From positions 744,001-808,000 of the forward strand of contig CM106586.1 in the NCBI GenBank assembly GCA_048013815.1: DNA of 64,000 nucleotides. The letters run 5' to 3'. The notes beneath the pieces are model-generated. The model was given only the letters and a program-made list of their open reading frames with translations. It was not told the origin of the DNA and searched no databases. Positions 19,882-61,245 of the stretch are shown here, piece after piece. The translations under genes were made by a program, and so were the position numbers. Positions within the stretch are counted from its first letter, which is position 1. Each line of letters begins with the position of its first letter. This DNA comes from Setoptus koraiensis (Eukaryota > Animalia > Arthropoda).

Positions 19882-21387
19882 TTACAAATCTATCAAAGAT
19901 TTGATTTGCTGGCCTATAGCGGTTAGAAATTCCTCTGTCGAACGTTGTGCTCTACTTGACATTATTTCTAATATCTGTTTCTCTTTTGCATTGTATTTTT
20001 TGCTGATTGCGCAATCCTCGCCTCGGTTAACACGGTCCATCAGTCCTTGTTGGTGATGAGCCTCGCTTCTTAAATGTGTGATGAGTTTGAATACGCCCGG
20101 ATGAGCGATACCAATAACCTGTTTTATTCGACGATGCCAGGCCTCGACAGAATTTTGTGTGCGCGGTAGGCCTTCGAATACCAGATCTTTTATGGACCAA
20201 AAATCCGGTAAGAATCGGGTAAGTCCTTGGCTTTGTGAGCTTCGTGAAGGACTTTCAATGTAGTTGTCTCTGAAATAAACCAAGAATTCTGATACTCTGG
20301 CATCATCTGACATGCCACTGGCAATGTTTTCGAAGGCTTCTTCGATTTCAAATGGTTCTAGAAAGGCAAGCGATATTATTTTGCGAACATCACTTACAAA
20401 CTTTTCATCCTCACCATACAGTCTTTTCAATCCTCTCGCTACAATCGCGCGGTATATGATCTGTCCAAAGTGGAACAGACAGCCTCTTTGCTTTGCTACC
20501 GGAAATTCGTCTTTACACGCCCGGATAGCAGCCCTTTCGAAATCCGAAAGTATAAATCTCGGCTCGAAAACTAGCTGCTCTTTTATACAGTAGCTCTTGA
20601 GATCTTGAATTAGTTTTTTGTAGAGTGCGACGGTTTTTGAGCTCATGAGAGCAAAAACTAGTGGGAAGGCTCTTCGTTTCGACCCGGCTCCAACCATCCC
20701 AAATATGCTGTAGAGCTGATAAAACATTTGCGGAACTACATAAAATGTACCATCCATTATAAGCATCTCAGATGAGGCCAGGTACGTGAGTGACTGTTTT
20801 GTACCGAATGAAATAACCCTGTGCGCTCCTACAACTGAATCCGCGATGAGGAATGGTCCTCCGTCGATTGCTGTCGCAATATCTTCTGGTATGACCAATT
20901 CATCTATATTCGATGGCTCCTTTATTGTGTCGGTCTGCTTCCTTACTCTTCTGATGATCTGGGCCTCGGCTGATGTGCTTGGCATTGTTGCCAACACCTC
21001 TCTCGAGGCTTCAGAATGCACTCGCGAAATTATCTGGCACGGTTTTGCGCTTCCTGTAGCCATCTCCTTGATTTTATGAATCAAGTCTCCACGCGCCTTC
21101 TTGCTTACCGATGGCGGATGGTCGTGTTCGCCGGATTCGGAATGGTAGTGGTGCTCTTGATTTACTAGAATTGTCTGCAGACGGCCTGTGCAACGTCTGG
21201 TGAAATACTCGGTGCATTTCCAGTAAAACTTATCCTCTCTGTTGCGGTCTTTGTAATAGGAGAACCCCTCAACAATCAAAAGTAACTTACCTTTTTCGGT
21301 ATATGTTGTTGAAACTGTTTTTGTTTCAGTGTCGGTTGTCTCGGTGTCCATGGTGTCATCTTGGTTCGAATCGAATGTTTTATCCAT
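19882..21387 (-). CDS. MULE (Mutator-like) transposase with FLYWCH zinc finger, 501 aa, intact
   Basis: EGFSY..FYWKC..C..HDH; IMDGTF, ILSDFE, CLFHF, TQNSVEAWH catalytic motifs. Confidence 0.92.
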   Translation of the reverse strand: MDKTFDSNQDDTMDTETTDTETKTVSTTYTEKGKLLLIVEGFSYYKDRNREDKFYWKCTEYFTRRCTGRLQTILVNQEHHYHSESGEHDHPPSVSKKARGDLIHKIKEMATGSAKPCQIISRVHSEASREVLATMPSTSAEAQIIRRVRKQTDTIKEPSNIDELVIPEDIATAIDGGPFLIADSVVGAHRVISFGTKQSLTYLASSEMLIMDGTFYVVPQMFYQLYSIFGMVGAGSKRRAFPLVFALMSSKTVALYKKLIQDLKSYCIKEQLVFEPRFILSDFERAAIRACKDEFPVAKQRGCLFHFGQIIYRAIVARGLKRLYGEDEKFVSDVRKIISLAFLEPFEIEEAFENIASGMSDDARVSEFLVYFRDNYIESPSRSSQSQGLTRFLPDFWSIKDLVFEGLPRTQNSVEAWHRRIKQVIGIAHPGVFKLITHLRSEAHHQQGLMDRVNRGEDCAISKKYNAKEKQILEIMSSRAQRSTEEFLTAIGQQIKSLIDL

Positions 21388-21422
21388 TGAAGTCTTGATT
21401 ATATTGATCGGATATTGGACAC

Positions 21423-21725
21423 GAAGCTAATTGATGAACAATACTTGATGAAGTGTAACGAGTTGAATAATACTTTTGTTTGTTTGAAGAAGTTGACACG
21501 AAGCGAATTGATGAATGATATTTGATGAAGTGTAACGAGTTGAATAATACTTTTGTTTGTTTGAAGAAGTTGTCACGAAGCGAATTGATGAATAATATTT
21601 GATGGAGTGTAACGAGTTGAATAATACTTTTGTTTGTTTGAAGAAGTTGTCACGAAGCGAATTGATGAATGATATTTGATGAAGTGTAACGAGTTGAATA
21701 ATACTCTTGTTTCTTTGAAGAAGTT
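21423..21725. repeat. Tandem repeat, 77-bp unit, ~4 copies
   Basis: AAGCGAATTG recurs at 21501, 21578, 21655. Confidence 0.85.
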
Positions 21726-22262
21726 GGTCTATTTGAAGAACTTGCAACATATAGCACGAGCGAGTTGCTCGTGCTCTTGCGACATGTCCGCAACCAATGT
21801 CTGTTGCTGGGCCCGGGCAAGATGTTGCAACAATTGTGTAGCGAGCAAACATGTAGAAGATGACCTTTGCTACATGTTTGTTCGCTGCACAATTGTTGCA
21901 ACATCTCGCCCGGGCCCAGCAACAGACATTGGGCTGGGGGTCGAGTGGGCAGGGCCCGCAAGTTGCAAACCTTTTCCAAAGAATGAACAAGAATGAAGAG
22001 AAAGGTGCAAGACAACGGAGAGTGAGCGACAGAGAGCTAGCAAGTTAAAAGTGTCGTCGGATTTATTCATTTTATAGTTGGTACAAATTAGAAGTTGAAT
22101 ACAATTAAATCATCATTTGATTCTGTCTTGGTGTTGCCATGTGTTCCTGTTTTAAGGTTTTCCTGTCATCTGGTTTTCCTGTTTTCCTGTCATTTTGTTT
22201 TCCTGTTTTCTTGTCATCTTGTTTTCATGTTTAATCCGTTAATTAGTTGCGTATTGGCTACA

Positions 22263-22742
22263 CTATTCATCAGAATTAGCATCGTCTGCCGCATTTTTCG
22301 AAGCAATTGCCACTACTGAATCGAACAAAAACTTCAGCAGGAAAACCTGGCGTTTCTTTCGCGATCTTCCTCCAAATTCTCTTTCAAATTCAGCCTCTCT
22401 TTCAATTTGTTGCCATTGCTCTTCAAAAGGATTGTCATGAGGATTGTTGACATTAGAGTTCAAGGCAGGATTATTATTGGTTGGCGCAGGATGAGTATGG
22501 ATTGGGACAGGATGAGTATGGATTGGGACAGGATGAGTATGGATTGTGACAGGACGGCTATATGGTACTGTATTGGTTGGACGACGCGCCGTTTCCTTGA
22601 AGTTATACTGCCTGTTATACTTATTAGGTAGCGTCGCTGGCCGGCGTCTTGGTGGTGGATTCAAGCCAACAGCCACAAATGACGAAATAAATATAACAGC
22701 AATCATAATGAGTGCGAACTTCTGCATCTTGCTTGGTGACAT
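22263..22742 (-). CDS. Secreted prepro-peptide-like protein, 159 aa (MULE cargo)
   Basis: Signal-like KFALIMIAVIFISSFVAVG, PIHTH repeats, acidic spacer, RSRKKR furin-type site, hydrophobic QVFLLKFLFDSVVAIAS; minus-strand TATAAATA at ~22855 with TCATTT downstream. Confidence 0.7.
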   Translation of the reverse strand: MSPSKMQKFALIMIAVIFISSFVAVGLNPPPRRRPATLPNKYNRQYNFKETARRPTNTVPYSRPVTIHTHPVPIHTHPVPIHTHPAPTNNNPALNSNVNNPHDNPFEEQWQQIEREAEFEREFGGRSRKKRQVFLLKFLFDSVVAIASKNAADDANSDE

Positions 22743-23859
22743 TTTGTTGGTTGCAATCTTCTATAGTTATTACTGACAATTTTGTTGGTTGCTATCTATT
22801 GTTATCAATGCTAACTATCTAATGAAATGATGCGATGGAGTGGTGCGCGCACCAGTATTTATACCCATTGATTTCAACCAACTCGACTCGACTTTACGAC
22901 CTTTCAGGGTGACCTTTCTCGGTGACCTTTCTTGTAGTTGTTGGACCTGCCCGGGCCCACGATAAGTGCGGGCTCAAGATAAAGATGGGCCCTTTCGACA
23001 CGCGCCTAAATCGACAGGAATTCCTCGCGGTTCGGCATGAGAATAATAAACGTGTTGTCTCCTTTGGGTCGCGCCAAGAAAATGTCGTTCTACACGTCTG
23101 CAAAGAGACGCTACACGCACGCCGCCAAATTCAATAAAGATGGGCTCTATCGACACGCGCCTAAATCGACAGGAATTCCTAATCGCGGTTCGGCATGAGA
23201 ATAATAAACGTGTTGTCTCTTTTGGGTCGCGCCAGGAAAATGTCGTTCTACATGTCTGCGAAGAGACGCTTCACGCACGCCGCCAAATTCAACAATCCTC
23301 ATGACAATCCTTTTCCGAAATCGATCATTTCATCGACAGAGGGGTTCAATTCATCGAACCATCCATTCGAATTTGATCGATTCAATTTGTCGATGAAACC
23401 TATGTCGGTGAATTGAATGAAACTAATTTGAATCGATGGTTCGATGAATTGAACCCCTCTGTCGATGAAATGATCAATTTCGAGCAATTCTTATTTCGAT
23501 AAACAAAGTGTCGATGAATGCATCGTGTCGGTGAATCGTAGGGCACCCAAGGAAACCTATTCAGCTGATAGACTCAGATTGAGTCCTCGTTAGCCTAGAT
23601 CGACTCAGCTCGAGGAGCTGAGCAAAATGGGTCTATACCTAGCCCCGTTTTATCCCGACTTTTTGCAATTTTCCGATAAAAATTTCAAAGTTCTATACCC
23701 TATTTGATATGACTAGAGATGCTCCAGAGAGCGTCAGAAAGGCAATTTTAGAGGAGTTTTAATTCAAAGTTTTCAAAGTTCAGAGTTTTATTTGTTGCTA
23801 CAATTTGTCACGCGTGACTGATACAAACTTAAGCCTATGCTCGTATCTCTCCATCGCAA

Positions 23860-25949
23860 CGGCTGCTAGAGGCACAACTTGAGTTAACTTGAATGTGAAG
23901 CGGTGTAGGATGTTACACATGCTTAATGAAATCATGCTGTATTTCATGGAAACACACCCTTTCCAAAAACTGTGGGAAAGAACTTTGCCACAGTGAGAGC
24001 ATAAAATGAATCTGTGATTTCCACACCCTGGAACCTCACATGTTGTCGCTTTGTCAGAACCGAATCTGAATTGCACGGCCTCAACTGTGTCGGGTTGTCC
24101 ACCAATAGACATTTCATCGTCACTGTAACCTGGATCTGTGTTATGCCAGGCATGAATCAGAAGATCCTGGTAACCTGGCGCTGACAACTGGTTGAAAACC
24201 AAAGATTGCATGTTTATGATGCCTTCTCTACTTATCACTTTGTCTTTGATTCCAATGATTGCTGCCTCCATGGATATGCGTTTTACAATTTTTTTTGTAT
24301 TGGCGGTTAAAGCCAACATCTAACGGTTGAAGTTCATCGGTAGTTCTTCTCGGAATGTCAAGAATTTCTATGCCTTTGCATTTGAGAGCGGCACGGTTGC
24401 GAGGATTGAGATGTCCCGACCAGTGATCCAGAAGCAGCATAGTATCTGGTTCTGGTATCTCCACGATTTTTGGAGTGCTTCCTCGCGAAGACCCCGCTAC
24501 CAGCCCGTGAGCTGGCATCGAGGGTGTTTTGAACATCAAAGTCGACCAATCTATAGAACGATCATTCCAATTAGGTTCATTTGCCATGTATGGGCGTTCA
24601 CCCAACACTGGAATGAGGACATCAGACATCCACCGATATAATAGCTCGCTTTCCAGTTTACCAGATTTGCTCGCAATAACATGTACATTCTTATACTTTC
24701 TCTCCAGACCAGCAACTGTCTCTGCAACTCTCGGCCCAAACTTTCCACTCGCCTCCTGCATAACTATAAGTAATTTTCCAATGAGATACCCATTTCGAGA
24801 AATCACAGGCTGTGTAGTGTATGAATGGGAGACTTTGTTCTTGGCTTGAACTGCCTCGGCCGTGTCTCGCTCACCGGCGAAAGAAAGTGTTCGTTTACCG
24901 GCAAACTCATAAGGAAATCCCACCTGATCTGTATTCAAGATGGCATATGAAAGGAATCTGTCGGCGTTCGAAGCGTATGTCTCGCGAAAATGGGCAATAT
25001 TTTCTTGATCAAGAGCTTTCATGGCTTGTTCTGATCTACCTTCAACCTTGGTGATAGCACGGGAGACAATTCCATTCCTACGCTTGAAATTGTGTAACCA
25101 AAACGACGTGGCTCGGAAGTAAACATTTAAACCAAGCATGTCAGCCTTGGTCCATGCCCACTCCTTGAGATGAGCCTCATGAATCTGCTGGTGTCGTTCG
25201 CGAGCTGACACGAATTCAGCCAAGACGTAGGCATCAATTTGTAGGTATTTCTCTTTTAAACTTCCCCCGTTCGACACGATTTCTCTAAATCTTTGTGTGT
25301 GATAGTATTGGAACCAACGGTATTTGGCCTTAATTGTTCTGTAAGATTTCCCCTCGTCAACCATCTTTAGAATGTTTTTCATAGTTGCAAAGGATTTCAT
25401 CACAGTGCTACCAATGTCAGCGTTTATATTAAATTCAAAATCATCATCTGTTAGCGAACGAGAGACCCCTTCGGAGGCTTTGCCTTCACTCTCACTCTCT
25501 GAAGAAGAAGAAGGTGCCTTCCCGGACATCCATTCATAGAGTTGCTTCGCTTTCACCATCTCGTCAGATTCCTTCAATCTCTTTGAATGCATCTTGTAGA
25601 CAGAGGGGCTCTTTGTAGCCAACTGGAGGCCGATATCCAGAATTTTGGTCATTTGTTCTTTGGATAATTTTTCTTTGAACAGTAGAAAGCCTTTGGGCTG
25701 TGGATTTTGTTCGGATGTCTGTTGAGAATTCTGTTCGTTGCTTGGTTGAATAAATTCTTCTCCCTCAAAAACCAACTCCTCATCAATGATTGATCCTGTT
25801 TCAGAATCGTCAGGAGCGAGGTCGTCGGAATCGTTTGATGTTTCAATGCCAGATGCAGCCTCTGTATCAGAATCTGTTTGTGATAGAGGCCTGCATAGTA
25901 TTGCACCAGAAAGCAAACAAATCAGTGTAAGGCAAACGAGTATTTTCAT
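23860..25949 (-). CDS. Signal-peptide-bearing pogo-type transposase (CENP-B HTH + DDE_1, DD35D, C-terminal Cys-rich domain); frameshift in T8 run at 24289-24296
   Basis: MKILVCLTLICLLSGAILC-RP; WLHNFKRRNGI; NTDQVG, LLLDHWSGH, QPLDVG with 35 residues between D2 and D3; CEVPGC..CSHC. Confidence 0.88.
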
Positions 25950-26489
25950 CCTTAAAATACGCTAGGTAACAAGAGAAGGATAGTTGAAGTAATATTTGCG
26001 ATGATACCAGAAAGAATGTGATTTTATATCTAACATAAATTATCTGAATGTATGACAGAATAAGACAAGACGATGACTCATAGAAAGTCATTATGTCACA
26101 CCACCGTAGAGCAAGCTCATCTTGACAAGGTCGTCTGCATACTAATTTGTATTGAAAAATACATTATTGATGGTCGCACTGCGTTGTAGCACAGTTGATA
26201 GATAATCTATGTGCAAATGTCCTTGAATCTTTAAACTTATCAGCTCTATACGTTCATACAAATCACTCTAGACTCTCTTAAACAGTTGAGATTGCCTTTC
26301 TGACGCTCTCTGGAGCATCTCTAGTCATATCAAATAGGGTATAGAACTTTGAAATTTTCATCGGAAAATTGCAAAAAGTTGGGATAAAACGGGGCTAGGT
26401 ATAGACCCATTTTGCTCAGCTCCTCGAGCTGAGTCGATCTAGGCTAACGAGGACTCAATCTGAGTCTATCAGCTGGATAGGTTTCCTCG

Positions 26490-28077
26490 TGAGTTATCAC
26501 CCAGAGCCATCAAGACAAGATTCAGGACCACCAACTGTGTCGAAATTCTTTGGGCTCATGGCTTATATAGACCCAACGTCGTTCAAAGAGGCGATGGCAG
26601 GCCCTGACAGTGCAGAATGGCAGACGGCGGTGGACAAAGAAATAATGGCTCACCAAGAGAACAAAACTTGGACGGTAATAAAAACGCCAGTCGGTGCAAA
26701 CCTTATAACCTCTCGCTGGGTGTTCAAAAGAAAAACATTAGCTGATGGGTCATTGGATCGCTATAAAGCGCGCCTGGTGGCCCGCGGTTACGATCAAAAT
26801 TATGGTCAAGAATACAACGAAACCTTTGCGCCGGTCGCGCGACACGAAACCATCAGACTTATGTTTGCACTGGCAACGAATCATTCGTTGAAATATCTAC
26901 AGTTCGATGTGGAAACCGCCTTCCTCCATGGTGAACTGGAGGAGACGGTGTTCATGGCCCCTCCAGCTGGAATGGACTGCCCAGGAGGGCACGCTCTCAA
27001 ACTCAATAAAAGTCTGTATGGGCTAAAACAGGCCCCGAGAGTCTGGAAAGAGAGTCTTGACAGCATCCTCGCCAAAATTGGCTTAAGAGCAACTACGTCC
27101 GATCCTTGCCTCTATCTCGGCAAAATATCGAATGAGGACGTCATGCTCATCATTTATGTCGATGATGGGCTGGCGTTCTCCACCAGTGGGCATGCGCTCG
27201 ATCAGCTACTAGGACAACTGTCACAATCACTCAAAATGAGGAAAGTGTGTGATAATACCTTCGTAGGATATGAATTCAAAGTTGGTGACTCATGCACCGT
27301 CCTCCAGGAGACCTACATCCGTCGAATGTTGAGGGCATACCAGATGGAGGAATGCTTGGAAGCGTCATCACCGATGGTCGACACGGTGGACCTTCAGAGT
27401 AAATCTGATAAGGACGAACCCAGCGAAGCTCCGTATCGCCAACTGATTGGATCTCTCCTATACTGCGCTTGCTGTACACGACCAGACATCTTATATTCGG
27501 TGTGCTTCCTCGCCAAGTATACGAACCCAATGGCAAAACATTGGACCGCCGCAAAGAGGATTCTGAGGTACCTCAAGGGCACAAAAGAACTAGGCCTGAA
27601 GTACAACAAGGTCGGGCCCTTTGAAGTTGAATTTTCATCCGACGCCGATTGGGCGAACAATCCGTGAGAAAATCCGTGAGTGGAATCATGGCCACCGCCA
27701 GTGGTGGACCAGTTATGTTCACCAGCAAACAGCAAAACTTGATTGCCTTGTCTACCACGGAGGCAGAATGTATAGCTGCTTCGTCGGCCGCGAGAGAGAT
27801 TTTATGGGTCAGAAGATTTCTCGAGGAAATAAAGGAAATCGTAAAAACAAGGCAAACAATTAAACTTTTGATTGACAATCAGCCAACAATCAAACTTATT
27901 GCTAACCCAGAGTTTAGAACGAGAACAAAACATCTGGACATCCGACTGGCGCACCTCCAAGACAATGTTAAGAACAAAATGTTCAACATTGAACATGTGG
28001 CCAGTGACAATCAAAAAGCAGACTTACTTACAAAGTCGCTGACGCCAAGAAAGCACGCCTCAAAAGGATCGGCATGA
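26490..28077 (+). pseudogene. Ty1/copia reverse transcriptase and RNase H (continuation of 16628-19292)
   Basis: YKARLVARG, FDVETAFLHG, LYGLKQAP, YVDD, SDADWA; RKSVSG, RTKHLDIR, ADLLTK. Confidence 0.95.
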
Positions 28078-34603: not shown

Positions 34604-35622
34604 CTCTGTACGAGCACCTGGAACTAGTATCGGAAATTCGAATTTTCAATTTCGAATTTCCAAGTTCGAAATGTGACCATCGAACTCTGACCACCGAACT
34701 CCGACGGAGCAGATGGAACTATCATCAGAGAATCGAATTTTCAATTTCGAATTTCGAAGTTCGAAATGTGGCCATCGAACTCTGACCACCGAACTCCGAC
34801 GGAGCAGATGGAACTATCATCAGAGAATCGAATTTTCAATTTCGAATTTCGAAGTTCGAAATGTGACCATCGAACTCTGACCATAGAACTAAGAACACTC
34901 AACCACTAACTTCGAATTGTGACCATCGAACTCTGTACGAGCACCTGGAACTAGTATCGGAAATTCGAATTTTCAATTTCGAATTTCCAAGTTCGAAATG
35001 TGACCATCGAACTCTGACCACCGAACTCCGACGGAGCAGATGAAACTATCACTAGAAAATCAAATTTTCAATTTCGAATTTCGAAGTTCGAAATGTGACC
35101 ATCGAACACTGACCACCGAACTCCGACGGAGCAGATGGAACTATCATCAGAGAATCGAATTTTCAATTTTGAATTTCGAAGTTCGAAATGTTACCACCGA
35201 ACTCTGACCATAGAACTAAGAACACTCAACCACTAACTTTGAACGAGCAGCTAAAACTCTTATTAGAAATTCGAATTTTCAATTTTGAAGTTCAAATTGT
35301 GGCCACCGAGCTCCTCACAAATTCGACCTAGTCAAATCTCCATAGGATTGCATACGAAATATTTTCGAGTAAAGCGATAATAGACCAAGTCAAATCTACA
35401 TCGGAATACATGTGTAATATCTAGCAGGATTCTCACAAATTTGACTAAGTCAAACCTCCATAGGATTACATAGTCACGTGAATGAACGTAGAGCCCAGAA
35501 CCATCCCAATAGCTGCTTAATTAAAATTAAGCGCTAAAAGCACTCATTTGTTCTACCCACGTGAATAAACGTAGAGCCCAGAACCATCCTAATAGCTGCT
35601 TAATTAAAATTAAGCGCTAAAA
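34604..35622 (-). mobile_element. HINE 5' part with TCGAA satellite and duplicated 5' end
   Basis: rc TTAGCGCTTAATTTT at ~35525 and ~35608 (83-bp tandem); satellite 34604-35300. Confidence 0.75.
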
Positions 35623-36670: not shown

Positions 36671-38434
36671 TTTTAGCGCTTAATTTTAATTAAGCTGCTT
36701 TTGGGGTGGTGATTATGACTACGTTTATTCACGTGACTATGTAATCCTATGGAGGTTTGACTTAGTCAAATTTGTGAGAATCCTGCTAGACATTACACAT
36801 GTATTCCGATGTAGATTCGACTTGGTCTATTATCCCTTCACTCGAAAATATTTCGTATGCAATTCTATGGAGATTTGACTAGGTCACATTTGTGCGCAGT
36901 TCGGTGGTGACAAATCGAACTTCAAAATTGAAAATTCGAATTTCTAACTTGTTGTCCCCTCAGTCGATGGACTGAGGCGGGGAGATCGTAGGTCGGGAAG
37001 GTGCTGTTGATTTACCACTCCCCAGTTCTCCCTCAATCTCCCAAATCTTCAGGAAAACTAAAGAAAAAGAAATACTTCAGCTGACGACAAAAAAAGTGTG
37101 ACAAATATTGTGACCGATCTACAGCGTTTAGTGTTGTGACCGATCGATAGTGTGACCGATCTCTAGCCTTCAGTGTTGTGACCGATCGATAGTGTGACCG
37201 ATCGATAGTGTGACATTTCTCCTTAAAAGTTTAAAGATCTACGTTCGTAACCTCCCTACGATCTAATAAGAGTTTTAGCTGCTCGTTCAAAGTTGGTGGT
37301 TGAGTGTTCTTAGTTCTATGGTCAGAGTTCGGTGGTAACATTTCGAACTTCGAAATTCGAAATTGAAAATTCGGATTTCTGATGAGAGTTACAGCTGTTC
37401 GTTCGATGTTCGATGGTCAGTGTTCGGTGGTAACATTTCGAACTTCGAAATTGAAAATTCGAATTTCTGATAAGAGTTACAGCTGTTCGTTCGATGTTCG
37501 ATGGTCAGTGTTCGGTGGTGACAATTCGAACTTCGAAATTGAAAATTCGGATTTCTGATGAGAGTTTCATCTGCTCGGTCGGAGTTCGATGGTCAGTGTT
37601 CGGTGGTCACATTTCGAACTTCGAAATTCGAAGATTGAAAATTCGAATTTCTGATACTAGTTCCAGGTGCTTGTACATAGTTCGATGGTCAGTGTTCGAT
37701 GGTCAGAGTTCCGTGGTCAGAGTTCGATGGTCACAATTCTAACTCCGAAATTCGAAATTCGAAAATTGAAAACTTGAATTCCCAATGATAGTTTCATCTG
37801 CTCGTTCGATGTTCGATGGTCAGAGTTCCGTGGTCAGAGTTCCGTGGTCAGAGTTCGATGGTCACAATTCGAAGTTCGAAGTTCGAAATTCGAAATTGAA
37901 AATTCGAATTTCCGATGACAGTTCCATCTGCTCGTTCGATGTTCGATGGTCACATTTCAAACTTCGGTGGTAACAATTCGAAGTTCGAAGTTCGAAAATT
38001 GAAAATTCGAATTTCTGATGATAGTTTCAGCTGCATTGTCGGAGTTCGATGGTCAGAGTTCCGTGGTCAGAGTTCGATGGTAACAATTCGAAATTCGATG
38101 GTCACATTTCGATCTTCGAAATTCGAAATCGATGCTCTATAACAAAGTATGCGCCATTGACTAATTGGTGTGTCCAACTAACTTACTCATTGTGGCGAAA
38201 CTGACCATTAGAATCTTACTAAATTCCGTACGCAAGCAATCAACATGTTTATCATGCTGCAATAGCAATTTGGAGAACTAGGATGTATTCTGTCATCTTT
38301 CCGGCTACTCTGATCTGACAGGCTTAGATGTGTATCTCCGACATGTTGTCTCATGCTCGCATCCATATTCCAACGATACTCGTCTATCCAAAAAATTAAG
38401 CGCTCGAGATACTGATTGAATCAGTATCACTTGT
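36671..38434 (+). mobile_element. Helentron-like HINE, complete, carrying TCGAA satellite
   Basis: 5' TTTTAGCGCTTAATTTT; 3' AAAATTAAGCGCTCGAGATACTGATTGAATCAGTATCACTTGT. Confidence 0.88.
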
Positions 38435-41117: not shown

Positions 41118-43079
41118 ATGAATCAGAACATCCTGACTCTTTATTTTCTCTTGGTACTTGCTGGTTTTGTTCTTGCTGGTCCACTAACTCGGAGGCAAGA
41201 CACCCCTCATCCAAATGAAAAGCCTGATGATAGTGAGACCGAGATTGAAGTGGACGTTGAGGCCGAGGAGCTTAAACAGCAAATTGAATTAGCCGAGGAG
41301 GTGACTGCTGAGGAGCTGTTTGGGGGCGCCTCTCTCTTCATGAGACTGAAATGGCTCTGCAAAGAGCATTGGACCTTTGCGAGAAGAAGAGACATCAGAA
41401 GATGCACGGTAGAACCGCAACAAATTATAACCAGATCGCTAAAAATCTCTTGAGGTTCATGACGGGCAACCCAGACCTTGGCAGCGAGTCAGAAAACACA
41501 GCAGATGTGGTCTCACCAAAAAAGAAACTACCTGACCCTGACTATTGCCAAGATGTAGTTATCGGTGGCCAGTCTTGGAAGTATCGCACGATGGAGATAA
41601 TTGTCGACCTCCACAACAAGGGCAGAACCGAAAGTTACTTACAGAGGCAGTACCCTCGCTACCGTCGACAGTATCTGTCTCACTTCAAGAAATGTGTTGA
41701 AGCAGGGAGCAACCTGCAATCGCATTCGAAATACATAAGTGACTATGTCATGCAACAGGCAGCTGATGCCATGGCGAAGAAGCTGTCTAATCATGAATAT
41801 AATATCAGGAGTTGGGGCGAAAGACGTGCCAGTCAATTTGGTGCTACTAATTTCAAGGCAAGCAATCATTGGTTAGCTGACATGAAAAATCGATTGAATG
41901 TGAGATCAAAGAAAGTCACATAATATGTGAGTGAGCCGTCAGCAGCTATGCTTGTTAGGAAAGGTACTGTCGAAGAGAGGATCGATCAATTCAGAAACGA
42001 CCTGGGAGATATCGTTCACTTCTTTCCACGATAACTCATGTGGAACATGGATCAAACAGGCTTTAAATATGAAGTTTCTAATGACCGCACTCTAGGCTTG
42101 CGAGGTGATCGTGACACAGAGCTGATTGTCGGAAGTAAGAATAAGAGGACCCATAGTTACACCTCTCAACCGATGATTTCTCGCGACGGAAAGCTCGTCG
42201 GTAAGCTGCTTCTGTGTCTCCAAGAGCCTGGTGGTGCATTTGGGAATCGCGATGTTGCGCCTAAGGTTCGACAATCAGAAATGGAATACAAAAACATCAA
42301 AGTTATTTGCAGTTCCTCAGGTCTGATGTCAGCAAAATTGATACAAGATTGGGTCGATGAGATACTCTTACTAATGGCGAAAGAGCGTATGCGATCATTC
42401 GATGGCAGTACAGATCTGGAGTCTATCGCATCACTAGGCACTATGTCAATTGATGATGACGATGTGTTTGCAGACTATTGTCCTGCTCTCAATTCAAGCT
42501 CTGCCTCCGAGCCGAGGCCAGGCCCATCTTTGGCTGATGACTTGACCGTTCCGCCAGAACTTGCAGGTCCATCATGGGCATCACACTCAAACCACTCACC
42601 TAAACCGGTCATATTCATCGATGGATCCAGCCAAACAAGTGAAGTTTGCCAATCAAAGCCGAACATTCTGCTCTTCACCGACTCATGGGGAGGTCACTCA
42701 AGTCAGTCACAAATCTCCAAATTGGCCGACCAGCGAGTTAGAGTGTTTCGAATCCCCGAAGGTACAACATCGAAGATTCAACCACTCGATGTGACATTCA
42801 ATCGTCAGTATGATATTTGTAAAGAAAATAACAGAGGCTGCGTTATATCGAGAAATGATACAAAATGTCACAAGTCGCTGGGGCATCATAAATATTCACT
42901 CACTCGTATGGAATCAGTTCAGTTCCCCTCTCTACCATAATATGCTGCGCTATTCTTGGAGGCACACTGATCCGTCATATGAAGATAGTGAACTCGAAGA
43001 AGGGGCTCCACCTCGAATGGTGAATAACATACAATTTGAAGTGTCTGGTGACCAAATGTGTCAGCATGAAAGGTGCTAG
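41118..43079 (+). pseudogene. Signal-peptide pogo transposase copy 2 (frameshifts and stops)
   Basis: MNQNILTLYFLLVLAGFVLA-GP, acidic tract, FKASNHWLADMK, WNMDQTG, FTDSWGGH, QPLDV (DD35D), homologous C-terminal region. Confidence 0.85.
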
Positions 43080-43326
43080 GACTCCCACTAATGAAGGTTC
43101 GTTCGATGTTCTGTGGTCACAATTCCAAGTTCGCTGGTGACAATTCGAAGTTCGATGGTCACATTTCGAACTTCGAAATTGAAAATTCGAATTTCCGATA
43201 CTAGTTTCAGGTGCTTGTACAGAGTTTGATGGTCACAATTCGAAGTTCGCTGGTGACAATTCGAAGTTCGGTGGTGACAATTCGGAGTTCTATGGTCAAT
43301 GTTCGATGGTCACATTTCGATCTGCA

Positions 43327-45224: not shown

Positions 45225-47631
45225 ACAAGTAATACTGATCAAATCAGTATTTCGAGCGCTTAATTTTTTGTGTGGACAAGTATTGTTGAAGGATTCAAAG
45301 GAGTTTATGACAACCTGTTAACCACCGAACTTCAAAATGTGACCATCGAACATTGACCATCGAACATCGAACGAGCAGATGGAAATTTCATCAGAAATTC
45401 GAATTTTCAATTTCGAATTTCTAAGTTCGAAATGTGACCATCGAAGTTCGAATTATCACCAGCGAACTTCAAATTGTGACCATTGAACTATGTACAAGCA
45501 CCTGGAACTCGTATCGGAAATTCGAATTTTCAATTTCGAAGTTCGAAATGTGACCATCGAACATTGACCACCGAACTCTGACCACCGAACTTCGACAGAG
45601 CCGATGAAACTGTCATCAGAAATTCGAATTTTTCAATTTCGAATTTCGAAATGTGACCATCGGACATTGACCATCGAACTTTGACCATCGAACATCGAAC
45701 GAGCAGCTGAAACTATCATCAGAAATTCGAATTTTCAATTTCGAATTTCGAAGTTCGAAGTTCGAAATGTGACCATCGAATTGTGACCATCGAACTTCGA
45801 ACTTTGACCATCGAACATCGAACGAGCAGCTGAAACTATCATCAGAAATTCGAATTTTCAATTTTCGAATTTCGAATTGTGACCATCGAACACTGACCAT
45901 CGAACAATGATCATCGAGCACCAACCATCGAACGAGCAGATGGAAATGTCATCAGAAATTCGAATTTTCAATTTCGAATTTCGAAGTTCGAATTGTGACC
46001 ATCGAATTGTGACTATCGAACATCAAACTCTGACCATCGAACATCGAACGAGCAGCTGTAACTCTTATCAGAAATCCGAATTTTCAATTTCGAATTTCGA
46101 AGTTCGAATTGTGACCATCGAATTGTGACTATCGAACATCAAACTCTGACCATCGAACATCGAACGAGCAGCTGTAACTCTTATCAGAAATCCGAATTTT
46201 GGGTGTTCTTCGGAACACGTACCAAGCCCGATTTCCTTCAAACTCCACAAAGGGGCCCCGAAGGGGCCCCAAAGAACGTTATTGATGGTCCGGAAGTGCG
46301 GAAATTCCTACTTCCGGAAATATAGAAAAATGCATTTTTCGGGCCTCAGAGGTGTCTCAGACCTGAAATTTTTGCATGTCTGTATAGATCTCGATAGGAG
46401 CATTGTGATTGCTGTCAATATCAAGATGAGTGACAGCCGGTTCGCTGGATATTCATTAAATACCTCATCAGTCACTTCCGGTTTGAGATATATCGCATTT
46501 AGTCTGGTTTGGTCGGCTCTTTTGCTAGATAAGGATTGCAACTCATACACAAGAATGAACGAAACCCGGTCCGATCGCGGGCCCCGCCCACTCGACTCCC
46601 AGTCCTCGGTAAGAATCTTTTTTGGTTTGGTGGCCGTCAGTCGTCCCGCCGGAGGCCGCAGGCCGTAGGCGTGGACGACTGGAGGCCGAACCCCTCCTCC
46701 GGCCTGGAATGAACGCATGAATAAAGCACGCGCAACTTGTAGCAAAAAGTAATTATGCACGCGCAAGGACTCGGTGTGTGGTCGCGCTATCTGCGGGCGC
46801 AGTTTCGCTCCGCGCCGCGTCCATTGGTCACGCCTCTTATGTTAAACTGATTTCATTCTGCTTCTGGGGCCTCTAGGTGCAATCTACCCTCGGTATGAAG
46901 ACGTTGGTACCCTACCCGATGTCCGTGCGGGTGGGTACGGCCGATTATACCGTCAATATGCCCTCAAATACCCTCGAATACCCAGAATGCGGTACCTCGG
47001 GTATCTCGATAACGAAGAATTTCCGCACTTCCGGAATACCTTTTCCGGTCTCAGGGCATCATACCCTACCCAAAAATACCCAAAATACCCAAATTGGGCG
47101 TGGTACGTGTTCCGAAGAACAACCCGAATTTTCAATTTCGAATTTCGAAGTTCGAAGTTCGAATTGTGACCATCGAATTGTGACCATCGAACTTCGAACT
47201 TTGACCATCGAACATCGAACGAGCAGCTGAAACTCTTATCAGAAATCCGAATTTTCAATTTCGAATTTCGAAGTTCGAAATGTCACCACCGAACTCCTAC
47301 CATGGAACTAAGAAAACTGAACCACTAACTTTGGACGATCAGCTAAAACTCTTATTAGAAATTCGAATTTTCAATTTTGAAGTTCGATTTGTCACCACCG
47401 AACTGCCCACAAATGTGACCTAGTCAAATCTCCATAGAATTGCATACGAAATATTTTCGAGTGAAGGGATAATAGACCAAGTCGAATCTACATCGGAATA
47501 CATGTGTAATGTCAAGCAGGATTCTCACAAATTTGACTAAGTCAAACCTCCATAGGATTACATAGTCACGTGAATAAACGTAGTCATAATCACCACCCCA
47601 ATAGCAGCTTAATTAAAATTAAGCGCTAAAA
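45225..47631 (-). mobile_element. HINE, complete, with TCGAA satellite and nested MITE; joined head-to-tail to another HINE 5' end at 45224
   Basis: rc 3' end at 45225; rc 5' end at 47616-47631. Confidence 0.8.
46201..47124. mobile_element. GG-ended MITE, complete
   Basis: TIR TTCTTCGGAACACGTACCA; perfect TSD CGAATTTT. Confidence 0.9.
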
Positions 47632-54368: not shown

Positions 54369-55409
54369 TACTGTACAAATTGTACGTGTCATTGCTGAGA
54401 AATTCTGAATCCTCAGCAATGACACCGTACGACTCAAATGTATGCCTTCTACTGTACAAATTAGACGTGTCATTGCTGAGAAATTCTGAATCCTCAGCAA
54501 TGACACCGTACAACTAAAATGTATGCCTTCTACTGTACAAATTGTACGTGTCATTGCTGAGAAATTCTGAATCCTCAGCAATGACACTATGTCAATTTTT
54601 TCGTGCCTTTGACAGTGCTATTTGTACGTGTCATTGCTGAGAACTACTGAATCCTCAGCAATGACACTGTGCGACTCAAATGTATGCCTTCTGTATCCAG
54701 GTTCTGATTGAAACACTAATTAGATAGTATGTTTGCAGTCAACAAAAAGCAGGGTGGGAAAATTGGAGAACGATTTTTTGTGTCTTTCCTTCCCCTCTAT
54801 TACCTTCCACTTCTCTGGAGGGAGTAAATAAGGAGCGCCATCTCGCTAAACTACACACTGGTTATTTCTACAGTAAAGTGCTATGCAAAATATATAAAAT
54901 ACAACTCTCTGTCCCGCTTTCTATTACACTCCCACTAACCTGTGCCAAGTGAGAGTTTGCTCTACTTGTTCCTCAGCAATATTTTTAGCGCTTAATTTTA
55001 ATTAAGCGCTAATGATGTAGTGATGTTGGATCCTAAACGGAGGAGGCAATCCACACACAAGCCTACAATTTTGAGTCACGCCCCCTCTTTAGCACACAGA
55101 AAGCTACAGCCTGAATGAGACTTAAGTCGCTCCACCTCCTCAGCACACAGAAAGCTACAGCCTGAATGAGACTTAAGTCGCTCCACCTCCTCAGCACACA
55201 GTAGGCTACACACTAGTTTAAGACTTAAGTCGCTCCACCTCCTCAGCACACAGTAAGCTTCAGCTTGATTGAGTCTCAATGGTTGATTGATGTTAAGGTA
55301 TATAAACATTACACATGTTAACTCTATGGAGATTTGAGTCTCTCAATTTCTTTGTTAAAGTTTCCAAGAAAAAAAGATTGAAAAATTCATTCGAAAGCCA
55401 CCAAATTCG

Positions 55410-56382
55410 GGTTGTACCATCGAATAGGAGCCACGCCCAATTTAGGTATTTTGGGTATTTTTGGGTGAGGTATAGTGCCCTGATACCCAAATGGGTATTC
55501 CGGAAGTGCGGAAATTCTTCGTTACCGAGATACCCGGGGTACCGCATTCTGGGTATTTCGGGGTATTTGAGGGCATATTGACGGTTCAATCGGCGATACC
55601 CACCTGCGCGGACATCGGGTAGGGTACTCGCGTCTCTGTGCCGAGGGTAGATGATACCCAGAAGCTCGGGAAAGAGGAAGAATGCAGTCAAACCGAAGAG
55701 GCGTGACCGTTGAGTGCGGCGCGGAGTGAAACTGCGCCCGCAGTTAGTGAGACCACCCACAGAGTCCTAGCGCGTGCAAGAAGAGAGGTCGACCCATTCG
55801 CAGCTCTGATACAGATGATGAGATTAGAATAAAGGGATATGTCCCCACTTTTCACTGATTTACTTCGTTACTCAACCTTCCATCTATACTGGACCCTCTT
55901 TCGATCTTTACCGACTCGGCCTTCGGCCTCGCGAGCTTGCCTCGCCTCGGGTTGAGGGCTTCGCCCTCAACCCTCGCTCGAACCGACAACCCCGGCCTTC
56001 GGCCGAGTAATTGTCACACATCCGGACACCAGAAACAATGCGAATGCGTGCCCGACACACGGAGAGTCGTGCGATGTTCGATAAGACTACTATCACGTAG
56101 ACCAGAAGTGGTTCATGGAGTCGAAGTTTATTATCTGGAGGTCTGGATGCTCTATGAAGCTAAATTCAACTGAACTGTAAAGACATCGTTAGGATCTATA
56201 CAATCATGTGAAAATTTTCGGTTTGAGGCCCCTGTGAGGCCCGAAAAATGCATTTTTCCATATCTCCGGAAGTAGAAATTTCCGCACTTCCGGACCACTT
56301 TATTTGTTCTTTGGGGCCCCTCCAGGGCCCAGGTGTCGAGTTTGAAGGAAATCGGGCTTGGCTCCTATTCGATGGAACACCT
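55410..56382. mobile_element. GG-ended MITE, complete, with non-matching flanks
   Basis: TIR CCATCGAATAGGAGCCA; left flank CAAATTCG, right flank GATGATTG. Confidence 0.85.
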
Positions 56383-57055
56383 GATGATTGTATTATTTTC
56401 GACAAACCTATTCCACTTACAGTAGCCAGAAGAATACTTTTACAGGCTCTTGAAGTTATGAATGATGACCCTACCACACCGAACGGATCTTCGCAACGAG
56501 TTAAAGATTCAAGATAAAGGGTCCTCGCAAGGAAGGTTTTTTCAGCTATGAATGTTCGTGGTATCAATAATATTGTTGATTGTGGAATGGTCCCTCCAAA
56601 CTCGTTGGATGATGACTCCTTCTCATTCAAATCTGATTCCGGTCAAGTCCGCAAAATCAAACTTTCTACTATGAAGATAATTGTGGGCATGGTAGAGAAG
56701 GGCAGCACAGAAAAATCTATCAAAGCGAAATATCCTTGGTATGAAAGAAATTACGCTAATCTTTTCAAACGGCAGTTGAAAAACGGGGGCAGCTACAGAC
56801 AACGTCTTTGCGATATTGACACGTTCGTCTGGCGGAAGTTCATTGAGGCTCGCCAGAATGATAAAGGCGTCCATCAATGGACTCTGCGTGCTTGGGCGAG
56901 AGAGAGATCCGCGGAGTTGAATATGACAACAGAATTCACGGCGTCCTCATGGTGGATTCACCAGTTTAAAAAGCGCCATGAGATAGTCTCGAGGAAAATA
57001 ACTCAGTATACTTCAAGAGCCAACCGAAATAAAGAGGAATTAGATATGCTCAATA
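56383..57055 (+). pseudogene. Signal-peptide pogo transposase copy 3, HTH/CENP-B part (one in-frame stop; 3' truncated)
   Basis: IIFDKPIP..; SIKAKYPWY, TLRAWA, FTASSWWIHQFKKRHEIVSRKIT homologous to 24228-25949. Confidence 0.8.
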
Positions 57056-58386
57056 TTAATAAAGGACCACTTGCATTTAGGGTCTCCAGAATTAAACTGA
57101 TCTGACATATATAAATCTAGTTTTTTGTGATCGGAAGAGCTTCCTGATCATGAATATAACAATTGCATCATCCTCTAGTTCGACGTTTGGCCACTAGGCG
57201 GCGTTGCTGTTTTTCGCTTTCGGGGCCTCTGGAGCCCTAGTATTTTGTCATAGAGACACGTTCTTGGTATCGTTGAATAGATCTCTAGAAGACGCATCTA
57301 TGAATGGTATAGTTTTTCTTCAGACTCGAGTCCGAGTCAAAAAAAAATTCGATGGAAAACTTTGGCCCCATTTTGAGGGGCCTCAGGAATGTCCGCCCAA
57401 TAATTTGACAGCTCATGAAAATGACACTGTATGAGAGCTTCAAAATTATATTTAATACAACGAAATCAAATTGAACGCCGATGACCAAAAATGAAAATAA
57501 CTACACACACCCCCACCTAAAATAAGACAGAAGGTGGATCGGGTGCTCCGTTGAATGACGGCCAAGTCCAAATTGGGTGTTTTGGGTATTGATGGGTGGG
57601 GTTTTGTACCCTGATACCCGAGTGGGTATTTCAGGGGTGCGGAAATTCTTCATCACCGTGATACCAGAGGTACCGCATTCTGGGTATTAAAGGGTATTTG
57701 AAGGCATATTGACATTAGAATTACGGTGATTTATCCCCACTCTCCACTCGTTCAGTGATTGAATGGTACTGTCTGTACTACTGACCCCTTTTACGATCGG
57801 CCTTGGGCCTCCCAAAATCTTTAGCAGTGCGCATGCGTACCTAACATAACCAACAGTGAATTTCTAACGGTTCAGGTGACGACTTTCTATAATAACAGCC
57901 AACGACTTTCTATAATAACAGTAAAGCGCCTTAAGAAGAATATCAACGAACAGGAATCACTCAAAATATATTTAATTTTATAAGCGCGGGCGACTTCAAC
58001 AGATTTGTTTATTGATTGACAGTGTCATTTACAATCGCTCTCATGAATATTGAGAGAGGTGAAGAGTGTTTCTCCCCCAAATCTGCGCACTACCGCAGCG
58101 CATTTTTTGAAACTCCACAAGAAAAACGATCCACAAGAAGCACTGAAACGATCCACAAGAAGCAGTAAACGACCCACAAGGAGCACAAGTTGCGCTCAAG
58201 CGTTGCTTGCCCTTAATGCAGGGCGAGGAAAGACTGGGACAAAATCCTACTAACGCCCTCGCCCTAGGGTATATAAAATTCTTGGAGGCACTTATTAGGA
58301 GCAAAATTCACCCTGAAGTAGCCCGTGGTTATGTCCGGGAGAATGTGGACGAGAGAGTGGTTGTTCTAACGAAGAGCGCCTCACTT

Positions 58387-61245
58387 TTTTAGCGCTTAAT
58401 TTTAATTAAGTAGCTATTGGGGTGGTTCTGGCAGATACGTTTATTCACGTGAGTAGAACAAATCAGTGCTTTTTTCAACTAGGAAAAAATAGCACGGTGA
58501 AAGCTGTACTGTGAGAAATAAACTAGATAAATTTAGAACAGTCAAAGCTTACAATGTTGATTAGTTAAATTTAGCACATAGAATGCTATGCGCGTTCACT
58601 TACTAGACGCGATTAGCACGCTCAAAGCTGAGATGCTAACTAGATGAATTTAGCACAGCAGAAGTCTAGCTGTATACAATTCGGATTTAGTACACTGGAA
58701 GCTAGAGGTGTTGGAACTAGGAGATTGTAGAACAGTAGATACTATTCAGGATAACTACTGCTTCTCAGCACTGTCAATGCTGATGTGGCTGAAACTAGAC
58801 GAGTGTAGCACGCTCAATACTGAGATGTAAAATAGATGAATTCAGCACAGCAGAAGGCTAGCTGTCTACAATTCTGATTTAGTACACTGGAAGCTAGATG
58901 CTTTGTAGCTAAGAGATTACAGTTCTTCCCTGTGTTAAAGTATCTAAACGTTAACAATGTTAACCCTATGGGAATTTGACTTTGACGATTTTGACAAAAA
59001 TTTTTTTCTTCTCTGTGTTAAAGTATCTAAACGTTAACAATGTTAACCCTATGGGAATTTGACTTTGACGATTTTGAAAAAAAAAATTTTCTTCTCTGTG
59101 TTAAAGTATCTAAACGTTAACAATGTTAACCCTATGGGAATTTGACTTTGACGATTTTGAAAAAAAAAATTTTGGGTGTTGTTCGGAAAGACGACACACT
59201 CCGATTTCGATCAAACTCAACACAGGGGCCCCAAATGGGCCCCCAAGTACAAATATGACAGTCCGGAAGTGCGGAAATTTTTACTTCCGGAGATATCGAA
59301 AAATCCATTTTTTTGGTCTCACAGATGCTTTTTACCATATATTTTGGTATAATCGTACAGTTTCCACTACGATGTACGTGATTCCATTAGATTCAATCAT
59401 ATTCGAGGACTTGATCTCGAGGAATTCACTGTTTTTTATCTAGCACTTCCGGTCCGAGGATCAACGCGAATCGGGTAGTTTGTTTGGCATAATCGTTTGT
59501 TCAAGCTTGCTTCTTGGAAGCTGGCTCGAATAAAACCCGGTCCGATCGCGGGCCCCGCCCACTCGACCCCCAGCCTACGGGAAACAATCCTTTCTCAGGA
59601 TGCGGGACGGCCCGTAGGGCCGTCACGAGGCAGGCCGTCAATCGTCTCGCCGTCGGCCGTCGGCCGAAAGCCGAAAGCCGAAAGCCGAAAGCGTGGACGG
59701 TAAGCCGGCCTATGCGGGTGGGCCAAAGGCCCACCCGCACATCGTGGCACATCCTGAGGGGCGTAGCCCCGAAGTGCGTGCTTAGAATCCCGTCGATGAT
59801 CCAGTGCCCGCATTTGCGCTCCGCGCCGCATCCATTGGTCACGCCTATTTAGTTAGACTACTTTTATTTTCCTCCTGGGGCTGTTAGGTAGAATCTAGCC
59901 TCTATAATCGACCATCAGTACCACAGCGTATGTGGATGCGGGAGGGTACGGCTGCCCGTACCCCAAATATGCCCACAAAAATACCCTGAAATACCCACAA
60001 TGCGGCACCTCGGGTATCTCGGGAACGAAGGATTTCCGCACTTCCGGAATACCTTTTCCGGTCTCAAGGCATCATACTCTACCCAAAAATACCCGAAATA
60101 CCCAAATTGGGGTGTGTCGTCTTTCCGAACAAGCCCCAAAATTTTCTTCTCTGTGTTAAAGTATCTAAACGTTAACAATGTTAACCCTATGGGAATTTGA
60201 CTTTGACGATTTTGAAAAAAAAATTTTTCTTCCCTGTGTTAAAGTATCTAAACGTTAACAATGTTAACCCTATGGGAATTTGACTTTGACGTTTTTGACA
60301 AAAATTTTTCGTTCCCTGTGTTGAAGTATCTAAACGTTAACAATGTTAACTCTATGGAGATTTGACAGAGTTCGATGGTCATAATTCGAAGTTCGCTGGT
60401 GACAATTCGAAGTTCGCTGGTGACAATTCGAAGTTCGATGGTCACATTTCGAAATTCGAAATTGAAAATTCGAATTTCTGATGACAGTTCCATCTGCCCG
60501 TTCGAAGTTCGGTGGTCACATTTCGAACTTCGAAATTCGAAATTGAAAATTCGAATTTCCGATACGAGTTCCAGGTGCTTGTACAGAGTTCGATGGTGAC
60601 AATTCGAAGTTCGCTGGTGACAATTCGAAGTTCGATGGTCACAATTCGAACTTCGAAATTCGAAATTGAAAATTCGATTTTCTGAAATGAGTTTCATTTG
60701 CTTTGTCGAAGTTCGATGGTCAGGGTTCGGTGGTCAGAGTTCGATGGTCACAATTCGAACTTCGGTGGTAACAATTCGAAGTTCGATGGTCAAAATTCGA
60801 AGTTCGAAATTCGAAATTGAAAATTCGATTTTCTAATGACAGTTCCATCTGCTCGTTCGATGTTCGGTAGTCAGTGTTCGATGGTCAGTGTTCGATGGTC
60901 AATGTTCGATGGTCACATTTCGAACTTCGAAATTCGAATTTGATGCACCATAACAAAGTGTGTGCCATTGACTAATTGGTTTGTCTAACTAAATTACTCA
61001 TTGTGGCGAAATTCACCATAAGAATCTTACTAAATTCCGTACGCAAGCAATCCACATGTGTATCATGCTGCGATAGAAATTTGGAGAACTTGTATTCATT
61101 CTGTCATCTTTTCGGCTACTCTGATCTGACAGGCATGGATGTTCATTTCCGACATGTTGTCACATACTCGCATCTTTATTCCAACTATACTCATCTATCC
61201 AAAAAATTAAGCGCTCGAAATACTGATTTGATCAGTATTACTTGT
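58387..61245 (+). mobile_element. HINE, complete, with ~80-bp tandem repeats, TCGAA satellite and nested MITE
   Basis: Both diagnostic ends present; inserted in a T-run of the MITE. Confidence 0.85.
59174..60137. mobile_element. GG-ended MITE, complete
   Basis: TIR TTGTTCGGAAAGACGACACAC; perfect TSD AAAATTTT. Confidence 0.9.

Follow-up and report, generated by a model that had tools for sequence, protein, structure and literature searches.

A conserved signal-peptide-like leader on a clade of Tc5-like transposases

The Tc4 and Tc5 elements of Caenorhabditis elegans are DNA transposons with a single open reading frame (ORF), long terminal repeats and the Pfam domain set HTH_Tnp_Tc5, DDE_1 and Transp_Tc5_C. 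They reportedly make a T-N-A duplication within the sequence CTNAG. The proteins pogo, Tigger, Fot1, CENP-B and Jerky combine a helix-turn-helix (HTH) of the CENP-B type with a DDE_1 domain of the DD35D pattern; to our knowledge, they have neither the Tc5-type Cys-rich tail nor an N-terminal hydrophobic leader, and they are nuclear, with no signal for the endoplasmic reticulum (ER). Here we describe a Tc5-like transposon family encountered in a stretch of 64,000 nucleotides from Setoptus koraiensis (assembly GCA_048013815.1, contig CM106586.1, positions 744,001 to 808,000 of the forward strand), which is referred to below as the window and to which the coordinates of its copies refer. The family shares with Tc4 and Tc5 the single ORF and the long terminal repeats and gives matches to the same Pfam set, some of them below the curated cut-offs. 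Unlike Tc5, it places a signal-peptide-like leader, a spacer and an acidic tract ahead of the DNA-binding domains; we know of no such leader in Tc5, the Tc5 protein itself having stood outside the comparison. CENP-B-type HTH and DDE_1 domains with DD35D are common to this family and to the pogo, Tigger, Fot1, CENP-B and Jerky proteins.

The family is built on a single intronless gene that begins with a leader of about 20 residues. This is followed by a spacer of the form x-Pro-Leu/Ile, often with Arg-Gln or a dibasic pair and often rich in Thr and Pro, and by a disordered acidic tract of 40–60 residues that closes with an (E)LF motif. Further downstream come, in this order, a small helical domain, a PKKK-type basic cluster, two HTH domains, a DD35D (DDE) domain and a Cys-rich tail. 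To all appearances, we are dealing with an ordinary Tc5/pogo-type transposon that carries an unexpected, conserved N-terminal module with a probable role in targeting. A secretion-type signal on an enzyme that must get to chromatin, retained across dozens of deeply diverged lineages, is counter-intuitive, and some of the leader-bearing elements are complete and show signs of recent activity. The literature searched yielded no account of any eukaryotic family of transposases that bears a signal peptide; a myxozoan preprint that contained the relevant terms proved unrelated to transposases with signal peptides.

The leader as a trait of one clade

The initial annotation of this DNA had proposed, from three divergent copies in the window, that selection maintains the leader across the family and that it is no one-off fusion. 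A wider sampling of relatives bears this out. A word-indexed search returned five relatives, and all three of the full-length ones open with a hydrophobic leader and, behind it, an acidic tract. When 1.84 billion representative proteins were searched exhaustively with HMMER, 1382 matches were obtained at E ≤ 1e-3, 158 of them at E ≤ 1e-30; the best 150 of the 1382 matches (clusters at 50% identity) were analysed, and the 20 relatives that were looked up are Logan or ENA contigs. The leader was scored in the first 35 residues with a nine-residue Kyte-Doolittle window and a threshold of 2.5, which was passed by 33 of the 46 proteins with enough N-terminal sequence among the 60 best matches. As a control, random internal windows of 35 residues were drawn from the same proteins, and 1.5% of these reach the hydrophobicity of the leader.

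An unrooted tree was built from 108 core regions running from the HTH to the DDE domain, with the leader columns excluded. FastTree and IQ-TREE recover the identical split into two clades, with a support of 99 in each case. Clade A, to which copies 1 and 2 of the window both belong, comprises 45 lineages with the leader, 4 without it and 9 that are truncated at the N-terminus, so that most homologues in this clade, 45 of the 49 with readable N-termini, carry the leader. Its sister, clade B, comprises 18 lineages without a leader, 29 for which its presence is unknown and 3 that pass the threshold (3/21), and these three have amphipathic or charged helices and no signal-type cores. The counts given are final ones, taken after inspection of borderline and N-extended ORFs and of the DNA upstream of three members that had been listed as leaderless. 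In P0022, the gene caller had taken an internal GTG as the start, and translation from the in-frame ATG yields MNRILLLLVLIYALCCAGA followed by PV; in P0016, the leader is there and its ATG has been lost; in P0017, the nearest relative of copy 2, a frameshift within a run of seven A (A7) has cut the ORF of the leader off from the body. The leader-bearing lineages, at 28–45% identity, come from many different public runs and assemblies and include complete elements such as copy 1 and that on contig L002.

Taken together, these comparisons show the leader as an ancestral trait of the whole clade, and we infer purifying selection on its physical design, acting on the active ancestors of its lineages. 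The simpler reading seems to be that the leader was gained on the branch leading to clade A, given that pogo-type transposases otherwise are ordinary proteins of the nucleus, though an unrooted tree cannot formally separate gain from loss. Members of clade B (P0064–P0152) start with a conserved amphipathic helix (MNPxNV..L..L) and also have the LF motif and an acidic tract; this helix may be the precursor of the leader.

Design of the leader

The statistics in this section refer to 41 leaders that start at the N-terminus of their own ORF, unless another number is given. The leader, which is the first part of the N-terminal module, largely follows the n-h-c rules for signal peptides that are cleaved. 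The flank that precedes the hydrophobic core is 0–6 residues long and has a mean net charge of +1.8, with a charge of at least +1 in 40 of the 41 leaders. The uncharged span measures 11–33 residues (median 18) and its nine-residue Kyte-Doolittle maximum lies between 2.0 and 4.0; about half of the spans have lengths in the range of signal peptides and about half are borderline with a membrane anchor. Past the core, the mean net charge is −1.3 over the next 15 residues and −5.4 over the next 40, and the charge difference favours the N-in/C-out orientation in 29 leaders. A proline is found within 12 residues after the core in 35 of 47 leaders, and in 24 of these 35 the position two before the first Pro is occupied by A, G, S, C or T, compared with the 31% expected from composition (p = 7e-6). 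A small residue followed by x-Pro is what a signal-peptidase site would look like, and the leaders of the window all fit this pattern, with LC|RP in copy 1, LA|GP in copy 2 and LA|RP in copy 3. Judged by these design rules, the leader would work as a signal peptide and target the protein to the ER.

The region downstream of the leader has a composition of its own. In 14 of 43 leaders, Arg-Gln/Glu is present no further than 18 residues on (5.0 in shuffles), dibasic pairs are found in 17 leaders (8.5 in shuffles), and Thr, Pro, Asp and Glu are enriched. With the RxLR-dEER leaders of oomycetes and the PEXEL leaders of Plasmodium this family shares only the general layout of a signal and an acidic tract: when RxLR or RxLx[EQD] was looked for in the approximately 45 residues after the leader, RxLR was found in none of the leaders and PEXEL in two, against a shuffle mean of 2.0. 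The leader sequences cannot be aligned across distant lineages, although their design is retained. Homology through the leader region can be followed in close pairs, as between GPLTRRQDTPHP..PDDSETE of copy 2 and TIVRRQVTPNP..PDTETDSDETE of contig L012.

An ATG stands 0–6 codons ahead of the core in 41 lineages, and the frame stays open through the acidic tract into the conserved motifs. In the AlphaFold2 model of copy 1, the leader forms an isolated helix (residues 2–18), which is followed by disorder at residues 22–84. The folded part starts at residue 97 with a confidently modelled small helical domain (97–142), after which come a second disordered stretch and then the DNA-binding and catalytic domains. 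At the other end of the protein, in a subclade that includes the nearest relative of copy 2, the zinc-finger tail is followed by a hydrophobic stretch rich in Gly and Ala (P0003, residues 683–701; P0015, 694–712; P0017, 652–670), which might span the membrane a second time or be no more than low-complexity sequence.

What the leader may do

The explanation that we favour, with somewhat better than even confidence, is that a working ER signal diverts most of the transposase while a minor nuclear pool transposes, so that the element would carry a built-in brake. The signal-recognition particle would read the leader, and the nascent transposase would be sent to the ER membrane with its N-terminus facing the cytosol. 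In this way, the element would route its enzyme through the endomembrane system or park it there, and activity in the nucleus would be owed to a small share of the protein that either avoids translocation or comes back. Control of the dose or the timing of transposition would be the most economical purpose of such an arrangement. A diverted main pool combined with a minor nuclear one is favoured because the DNA-binding, catalytic and zinc-binding domains keep the constraint of a nuclear enzyme. The logic would be that of proteins such as parathyroid hormone-related protein (PTHrP) and isoforms of cathepsin L, which act in the nucleus although they bear an ER signal and which are not proteins of mobile elements. 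There, an inefficient signal or an alternative start supplies one pool for secretion and another for the nucleus; the leader-bearing transposases showed no second start codon that is conserved. If the leader does work as an ER signal, these elements would offer a natural system for the study of how a mobile element controls the place and time of its own enzyme, with dose limitation, tethering at the nuclear envelope and cell-to-cell transfer as the options. On the practical side, secretome screens of such genomes will list the leader-bearing transposases as secreted proteins.

Several points weigh against a diverting ER signal. A transposase that is fully lumenal cannot reach the chromatin, and the model needs an escape route; in the ER lumen, the zinc-binding cysteines would face an oxidising compartment; and N-glycosylation sequons show no enrichment directly behind the leader (13 observed against 10.8 expected). 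In addition, about half of the leaders have uncharged spans of 18–22 residues, lengths that would suit a membrane anchor as well, and the amphipathic helix and acidic tract of clade B mean that the leader may go back to a helix that had another role.

Alternatively, an uncleaved anchor might tether the transposase to the ER and nuclear envelope, with the body reaching the inner nuclear membrane face by means of the acidic linker and the basic cluster, and its activity would then be confined to peripheral, repeat-rich chromatin. Such an arrangement would suit the half or so of uncharged spans that measure 18–22 residues or more, the disordered linker of at least 60 residues between the helix and the folded body with the PKKK-type cluster after it, the nesting of the window copies in other transposons and the hydrophobic tail of the subclade mentioned above. 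Yet the charge balance, with +1.8 on the N-terminal flank and a negative C-terminal flank, predicts the N-in/C-out orientation and hence a lumenal body, many cores have just 11–16 residues, and the small-any-Pro pattern points to cleavage by signal peptidase; we regard a permanent anchor as rather unlikely. We think it less likely still that the leader is a non-membrane helix, serving in oligomerisation, autoinhibition or as a degradation signal, that merely resembles a signal peptide. The clade B proteins, which start with a conserved amphipathic helix together with an acidic tract and an LF motif, do suggest that an N-terminal helix is older than the leader. However, the cores of clade A are uncharged, drift freely in sequence while keeping their hydrophobicity and end in a cleavage-type motif, which is how signal peptides evolve and unlike the behaviour of packing helices, and the helix of the copy 1 model stands isolated before some 60 disordered residues.

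A working secretion signal might also let the transposase leave the cell that produces it and act in another one. It could pass from somatic or nurse tissue into oocytes, bypassing the germline silencing of transposase expression, or, in a plant-feeding mite, be exported together with secreted proteins. An analogy is offered by the envelope proteins of errantiviruses (gypsy-type), which are encoded by a transposon, bear a true signal peptide and provide for exit from one cell and entry into another. There, the signal sits on a membrane-fusion protein and not on a recombinase, and the analogy extends neither to fold nor to function; we consider transfer between cells improbable. It is harder still to believe that the leader is untranslated or neutral, a T-rich 5′ region read as hydrophobic in an over-extended ORF call. 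The ORFs of the proteins from outside the window were indeed called in prokaryote style, with visibly misplaced starts in two cases, but these mistakes concealed leaders and created none; the ATG just upstream of the core in 41 lineages with the frame open into the conserved motifs, the control rate of 1.5% and the bias in the residues before Pro speak against it as well. The least credible idea is a one-off fusion, or an exon captured from a secreted host gene, in this genome only: it has nothing to recommend it except that a signal peptide is, a priori, an odd thing to find on a transposase, and it is contradicted by the 45 leader-bearing lineages with their wide divergence and many sources.

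The family and its copies in the window

The assignment to the Tc5 group was made with Pfam, which matches HTH_Tnp_Tc5 and DDE_1 on copies 1 and 2 and Transp_Tc5_C on the tail of copy 1. HTH_Tnp_Tc5 (PF03221) is found in copy 2 with E = 0.0035, in copy 1 with E = 0.0056 (below the curated cut-off) and in copy 4 with E = 7e-5 (above it). DDE_1 (PF03184) exceeds its cut-off in copy 1 (22.5 against 22) and in copy 2 (25.1), and Transp_Tc5_C (PF04236) reaches E = 1e-4 on the copy 1 tail with a score of 23.1 against a cut-off of 27.4; the same domain is truncated in copy 2 at 43079. Because these scores lie near or below the curated cut-offs, 37 family members were checked. Among them, HTH_Tnp_Tc5 was matched in 28, DDE_1 in 22 and Transp_Tc5_C in 19, with best E values of 3e-11, 8e-10 and 2e-8, respectively. 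Such weak similarity (E of 1e-4 to 1e-11) places the family on a distant branch relative to Tc5. The AlphaFold2 model of copy 1, for which the family alignment was the input, has a mean pLDDT of 73.9, and the solved structures that match it best are Mos1 (4u7b_A, E = 9e-5, probability 1.0), the catalytic domain of Sleeping Beauty (5cr4) and the DNA-binding domain of CENP-B (1hlv_A). Mos1 and Sleeping Beauty provide the best fold matches, but at a sequence identity of 10–13%, and both lack the leader, the acidic tract, the additional helical domain and the Cys-rich tail of this family.

The ends of the elements are consistent with this placement. A terminus CAAGG(A/T)A is found at the ends of contigs L001, L002, L007, L008 and L010/L011, and CAAGG also at copies 1 and 3. 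The outer flanks read C-T-N-A in six of seven readable cases, and L002 has TAA on both sides inside CTAAG. These flanks would fit the T-N-A duplication in CTNAG reported for Tc4 and Tc5. The other flank of copy 1 abuts a MULE, and copy 2 has no ends.

Copy 1 is a complete element on the minus strand (23548–26489) with CAAGG/CGAGG termini and terminal inverted repeats of 197 nucleotides (23550–23746 and 26291–26487) that are 98% complementary. It is young and present in many copies. Its ORF of 573 residues (24231–25949, minus strand) covers the leader, acidic tract, helical domain, HTH and DDE domain with DD35D, and it opens with the signal-like leader MKILVCLTLICLLSGAILC (25949–25893), followed by RP and the acidic tract, in agreement with the design described for this copy at the outset. 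At the conserved NRQYKK site, a run of eight A (A8, 24289–24296, minus strand) shifts the rest of the gene (23798–24319, minus strand) into another frame, where an ORF of 173 residues encodes the Tc5-type C-terminal Cys-rich domain, the Transp_Tc5_C match that falls below the curated cut-off.

Signs of recent activity were sought in the public runs X1, X2, X5 and X6 over window positions 23450–26600. X1 is possibly the sample behind the assembly of the window and hence not independent, and X5 and X6 seem to be a single data set deposited under two entries. X1 and X2 contain a contig of 2233 nucleotides that is identical to 24088–26320, with a word depth of about 125. In the interior of copy 1, the word depth exceeds that of the left flank about 7-fold, a contrast that rests on X1 since the flank depth is 18 in X1 and 158 in X2. 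The terminal repeats reach word depths of 800–1500, about 6–12 times the interior, which suggests several full copies together with many short derivatives that consist of terminal repeats only, similar to miniature inverted-repeat transposable elements (MITEs). The 2233-nucleotide contig retains the frame-breaking A8 run, whereas X5 and X6 have one letter fewer there, so that both ORFs of copy 1 share one frame; all four runs have 4 letters more than the window copy at 23972–23976, in the zinc-finger tail. The frame-intact variant and the extra letters indicate that less damaged versions of copy 1 exist. An intact ORF of 682 residues, with the leader and both termini, is present in identical form on contigs of five runs outside this genome.

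We considered an assembly error as the source of the A8 frameshift and rejected it for this genome, as the short-read contigs of X1 and X2 share the run (X1 not being fully independent). The invariant contig at a depth of about 125 indicates that A8 is present in most or all copies of the copy 1 family here, as opposed to one A fewer in X5 and X6; its persistence could be due either to amplification of the frameshifted copy in trans or to slippage in the A run that rescues the frame. The frameshifts of three separate lineages lie in homopolymers, namely A8 of copy 1, A7 of L012 (300–320) and G5 of copy 2 (41322–41326). With regard to the surroundings, a FLYWCH-type MULE (19303–23548) ends exactly at the start of copy 1, and the two sit at one point of a copia element (18234–19708 and 26489–27667). 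The flank of copy 1 on the MULE side is not T-N-A, and therefore one of the two probably inserted at the edge of the other.

Copy 2 consists of four overlapping or adjacent ORFs on the plus strand (41118–43112) that form a single broken gene, a pseudogene; it is a decayed, dead cut-and-paste DNA transposon of Tc5-like type (pogo superfamily). The first ORF opens at 41118 with the leader MNQNILTLYFLLVLAGFVLA (41118–41177, plus strand, 20 codons), followed by GPLTRRQ. The Kyte-Doolittle nine-residue maximum of this leader is 3.09, and VLA followed by GP fits the family pattern of a small residue, any residue and Pro. The basic, Pro-containing spacer, the acidic tract and an ELFGG motif follow in frame 3 (41178–41326, plus strand) up to the G5 run (41322–41326), where an indel of one nucleotide between ELFGG and RLS separates the frame of the leader from frame 2 of the body. 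The homologous stretch RRQ..TP..P..acidic..LFGGRLS runs uninterrupted in one frame on contig L012, which carries the nearest relative of copy 2.

The transposase body (41324–42811, plus strand, frame 2) was identified by tblastn and by the Pfam matches to HTH_Tnp_Tc5 and DDE_1, and it keeps the order of helical domain, basic PKKK cluster, Tc5/CENP-B-type HTH and DDE domain. The 573-residue ORF of copy 1 aligns with it over 41399–42838 (30% identity over 492 residues, E = 2e-53) and the tail ORF of copy 1 over 42819–43112 (40% identity, E = 6e-19). The catalytic triad lies at 42050–42052, 42680–42682 and 42788–42790, and the gap between the second and third Asp is exactly 35 residues. The stretch ahead of the second Asp has no consensus in an alignment of 37 sequences and low model confidence. 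In this respect, the initial annotation, which had described the leader with its acidic tract, the homologous domain, the preserved DD35D and a variable insert before the second Asp, was accurate on every point. What it had not recorded is the damage: two frameshifts, two in-frame TAA codons within the body (41921–41923 and 42032–42034), a truncated tail and the absence of terminal repeats. The second frameshift, at about 42812–42815, falls at the conserved NRQYK site, as seen from outside relatives that align with frame 2 over 41324–42811 and with frame 3 from 42816 on. The tail (42812–43079, plus strand, frame 3) holds the truncated Cys-rich domain and ends in a stop codon at 43077–43079. 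A search for terminal inverted repeats of copy 2 found none; a CAAGG/CCTTG pair is missing, and satellite sequence makes up the right flank. As copy 2 is dead, its own leader is a relic, and the selection deduced above concerns the active ancestors of each lineage. The satellite that directly follows its truncated end is made of GGTGACAATTCGAAGTTCG-like units (43100–43320), which recur in the window at 34604–35312, 37286–38129, 45321–46167 and 60365–60934.

Copy 3 is evidently the 5′ end of a third element (988–1815, minus strand), with the terminus TAA|CAAGGTAGCC at 1815, a 5′ region of about 640 nucleotides and the ATG at 1177. Its 63 codons, from 1177 down to 988, encode the leader MKLFAASLTLLLVISSALA followed by RP (A|RPI), an acidic tract and EELF. 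Its membership follows from the leader design, from the CAAGG terminus with the TAA flank and from the 14-mer CTCGAGGAGCTGAG, which has the same offset from the terminus in copy 3 and in the terminal repeat of copy 1. In copy 3, this 14-mer lies at 1741–1754, offset 62–75 from the CAAGG terminus, and the remaining terminal regions of copies 1 and 3 differ; it is a candidate binding site for the transposase. The leader and acidic tract ascribed to this copy were thus found as described, whereas no homologous transposase domain was detected by tblastn of copy 1 against positions 1–1400 (E > 5) and no body of copy 3 is visible in the window, so that the earlier description holds for the N-terminal module only.

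Right after its leader, copy 3 is cut by a repeat of about 585 nucleotides (403–987), which is 99% identical to 55409–55993 in the opposite orientation. The latter copy of the repeat is located just upstream of copy 4 (56380–57057, plus strand), a fragment of the family that contains the HTH only, with neither leader nor DDE domain, and was detected by tblastn (E = 6e-31) and by the Pfam match to HTH_Tnp_Tc5. Older copies of the repeat are found at 46756–47103, 11082–11652, 59809–60111 and elsewhere in the window.

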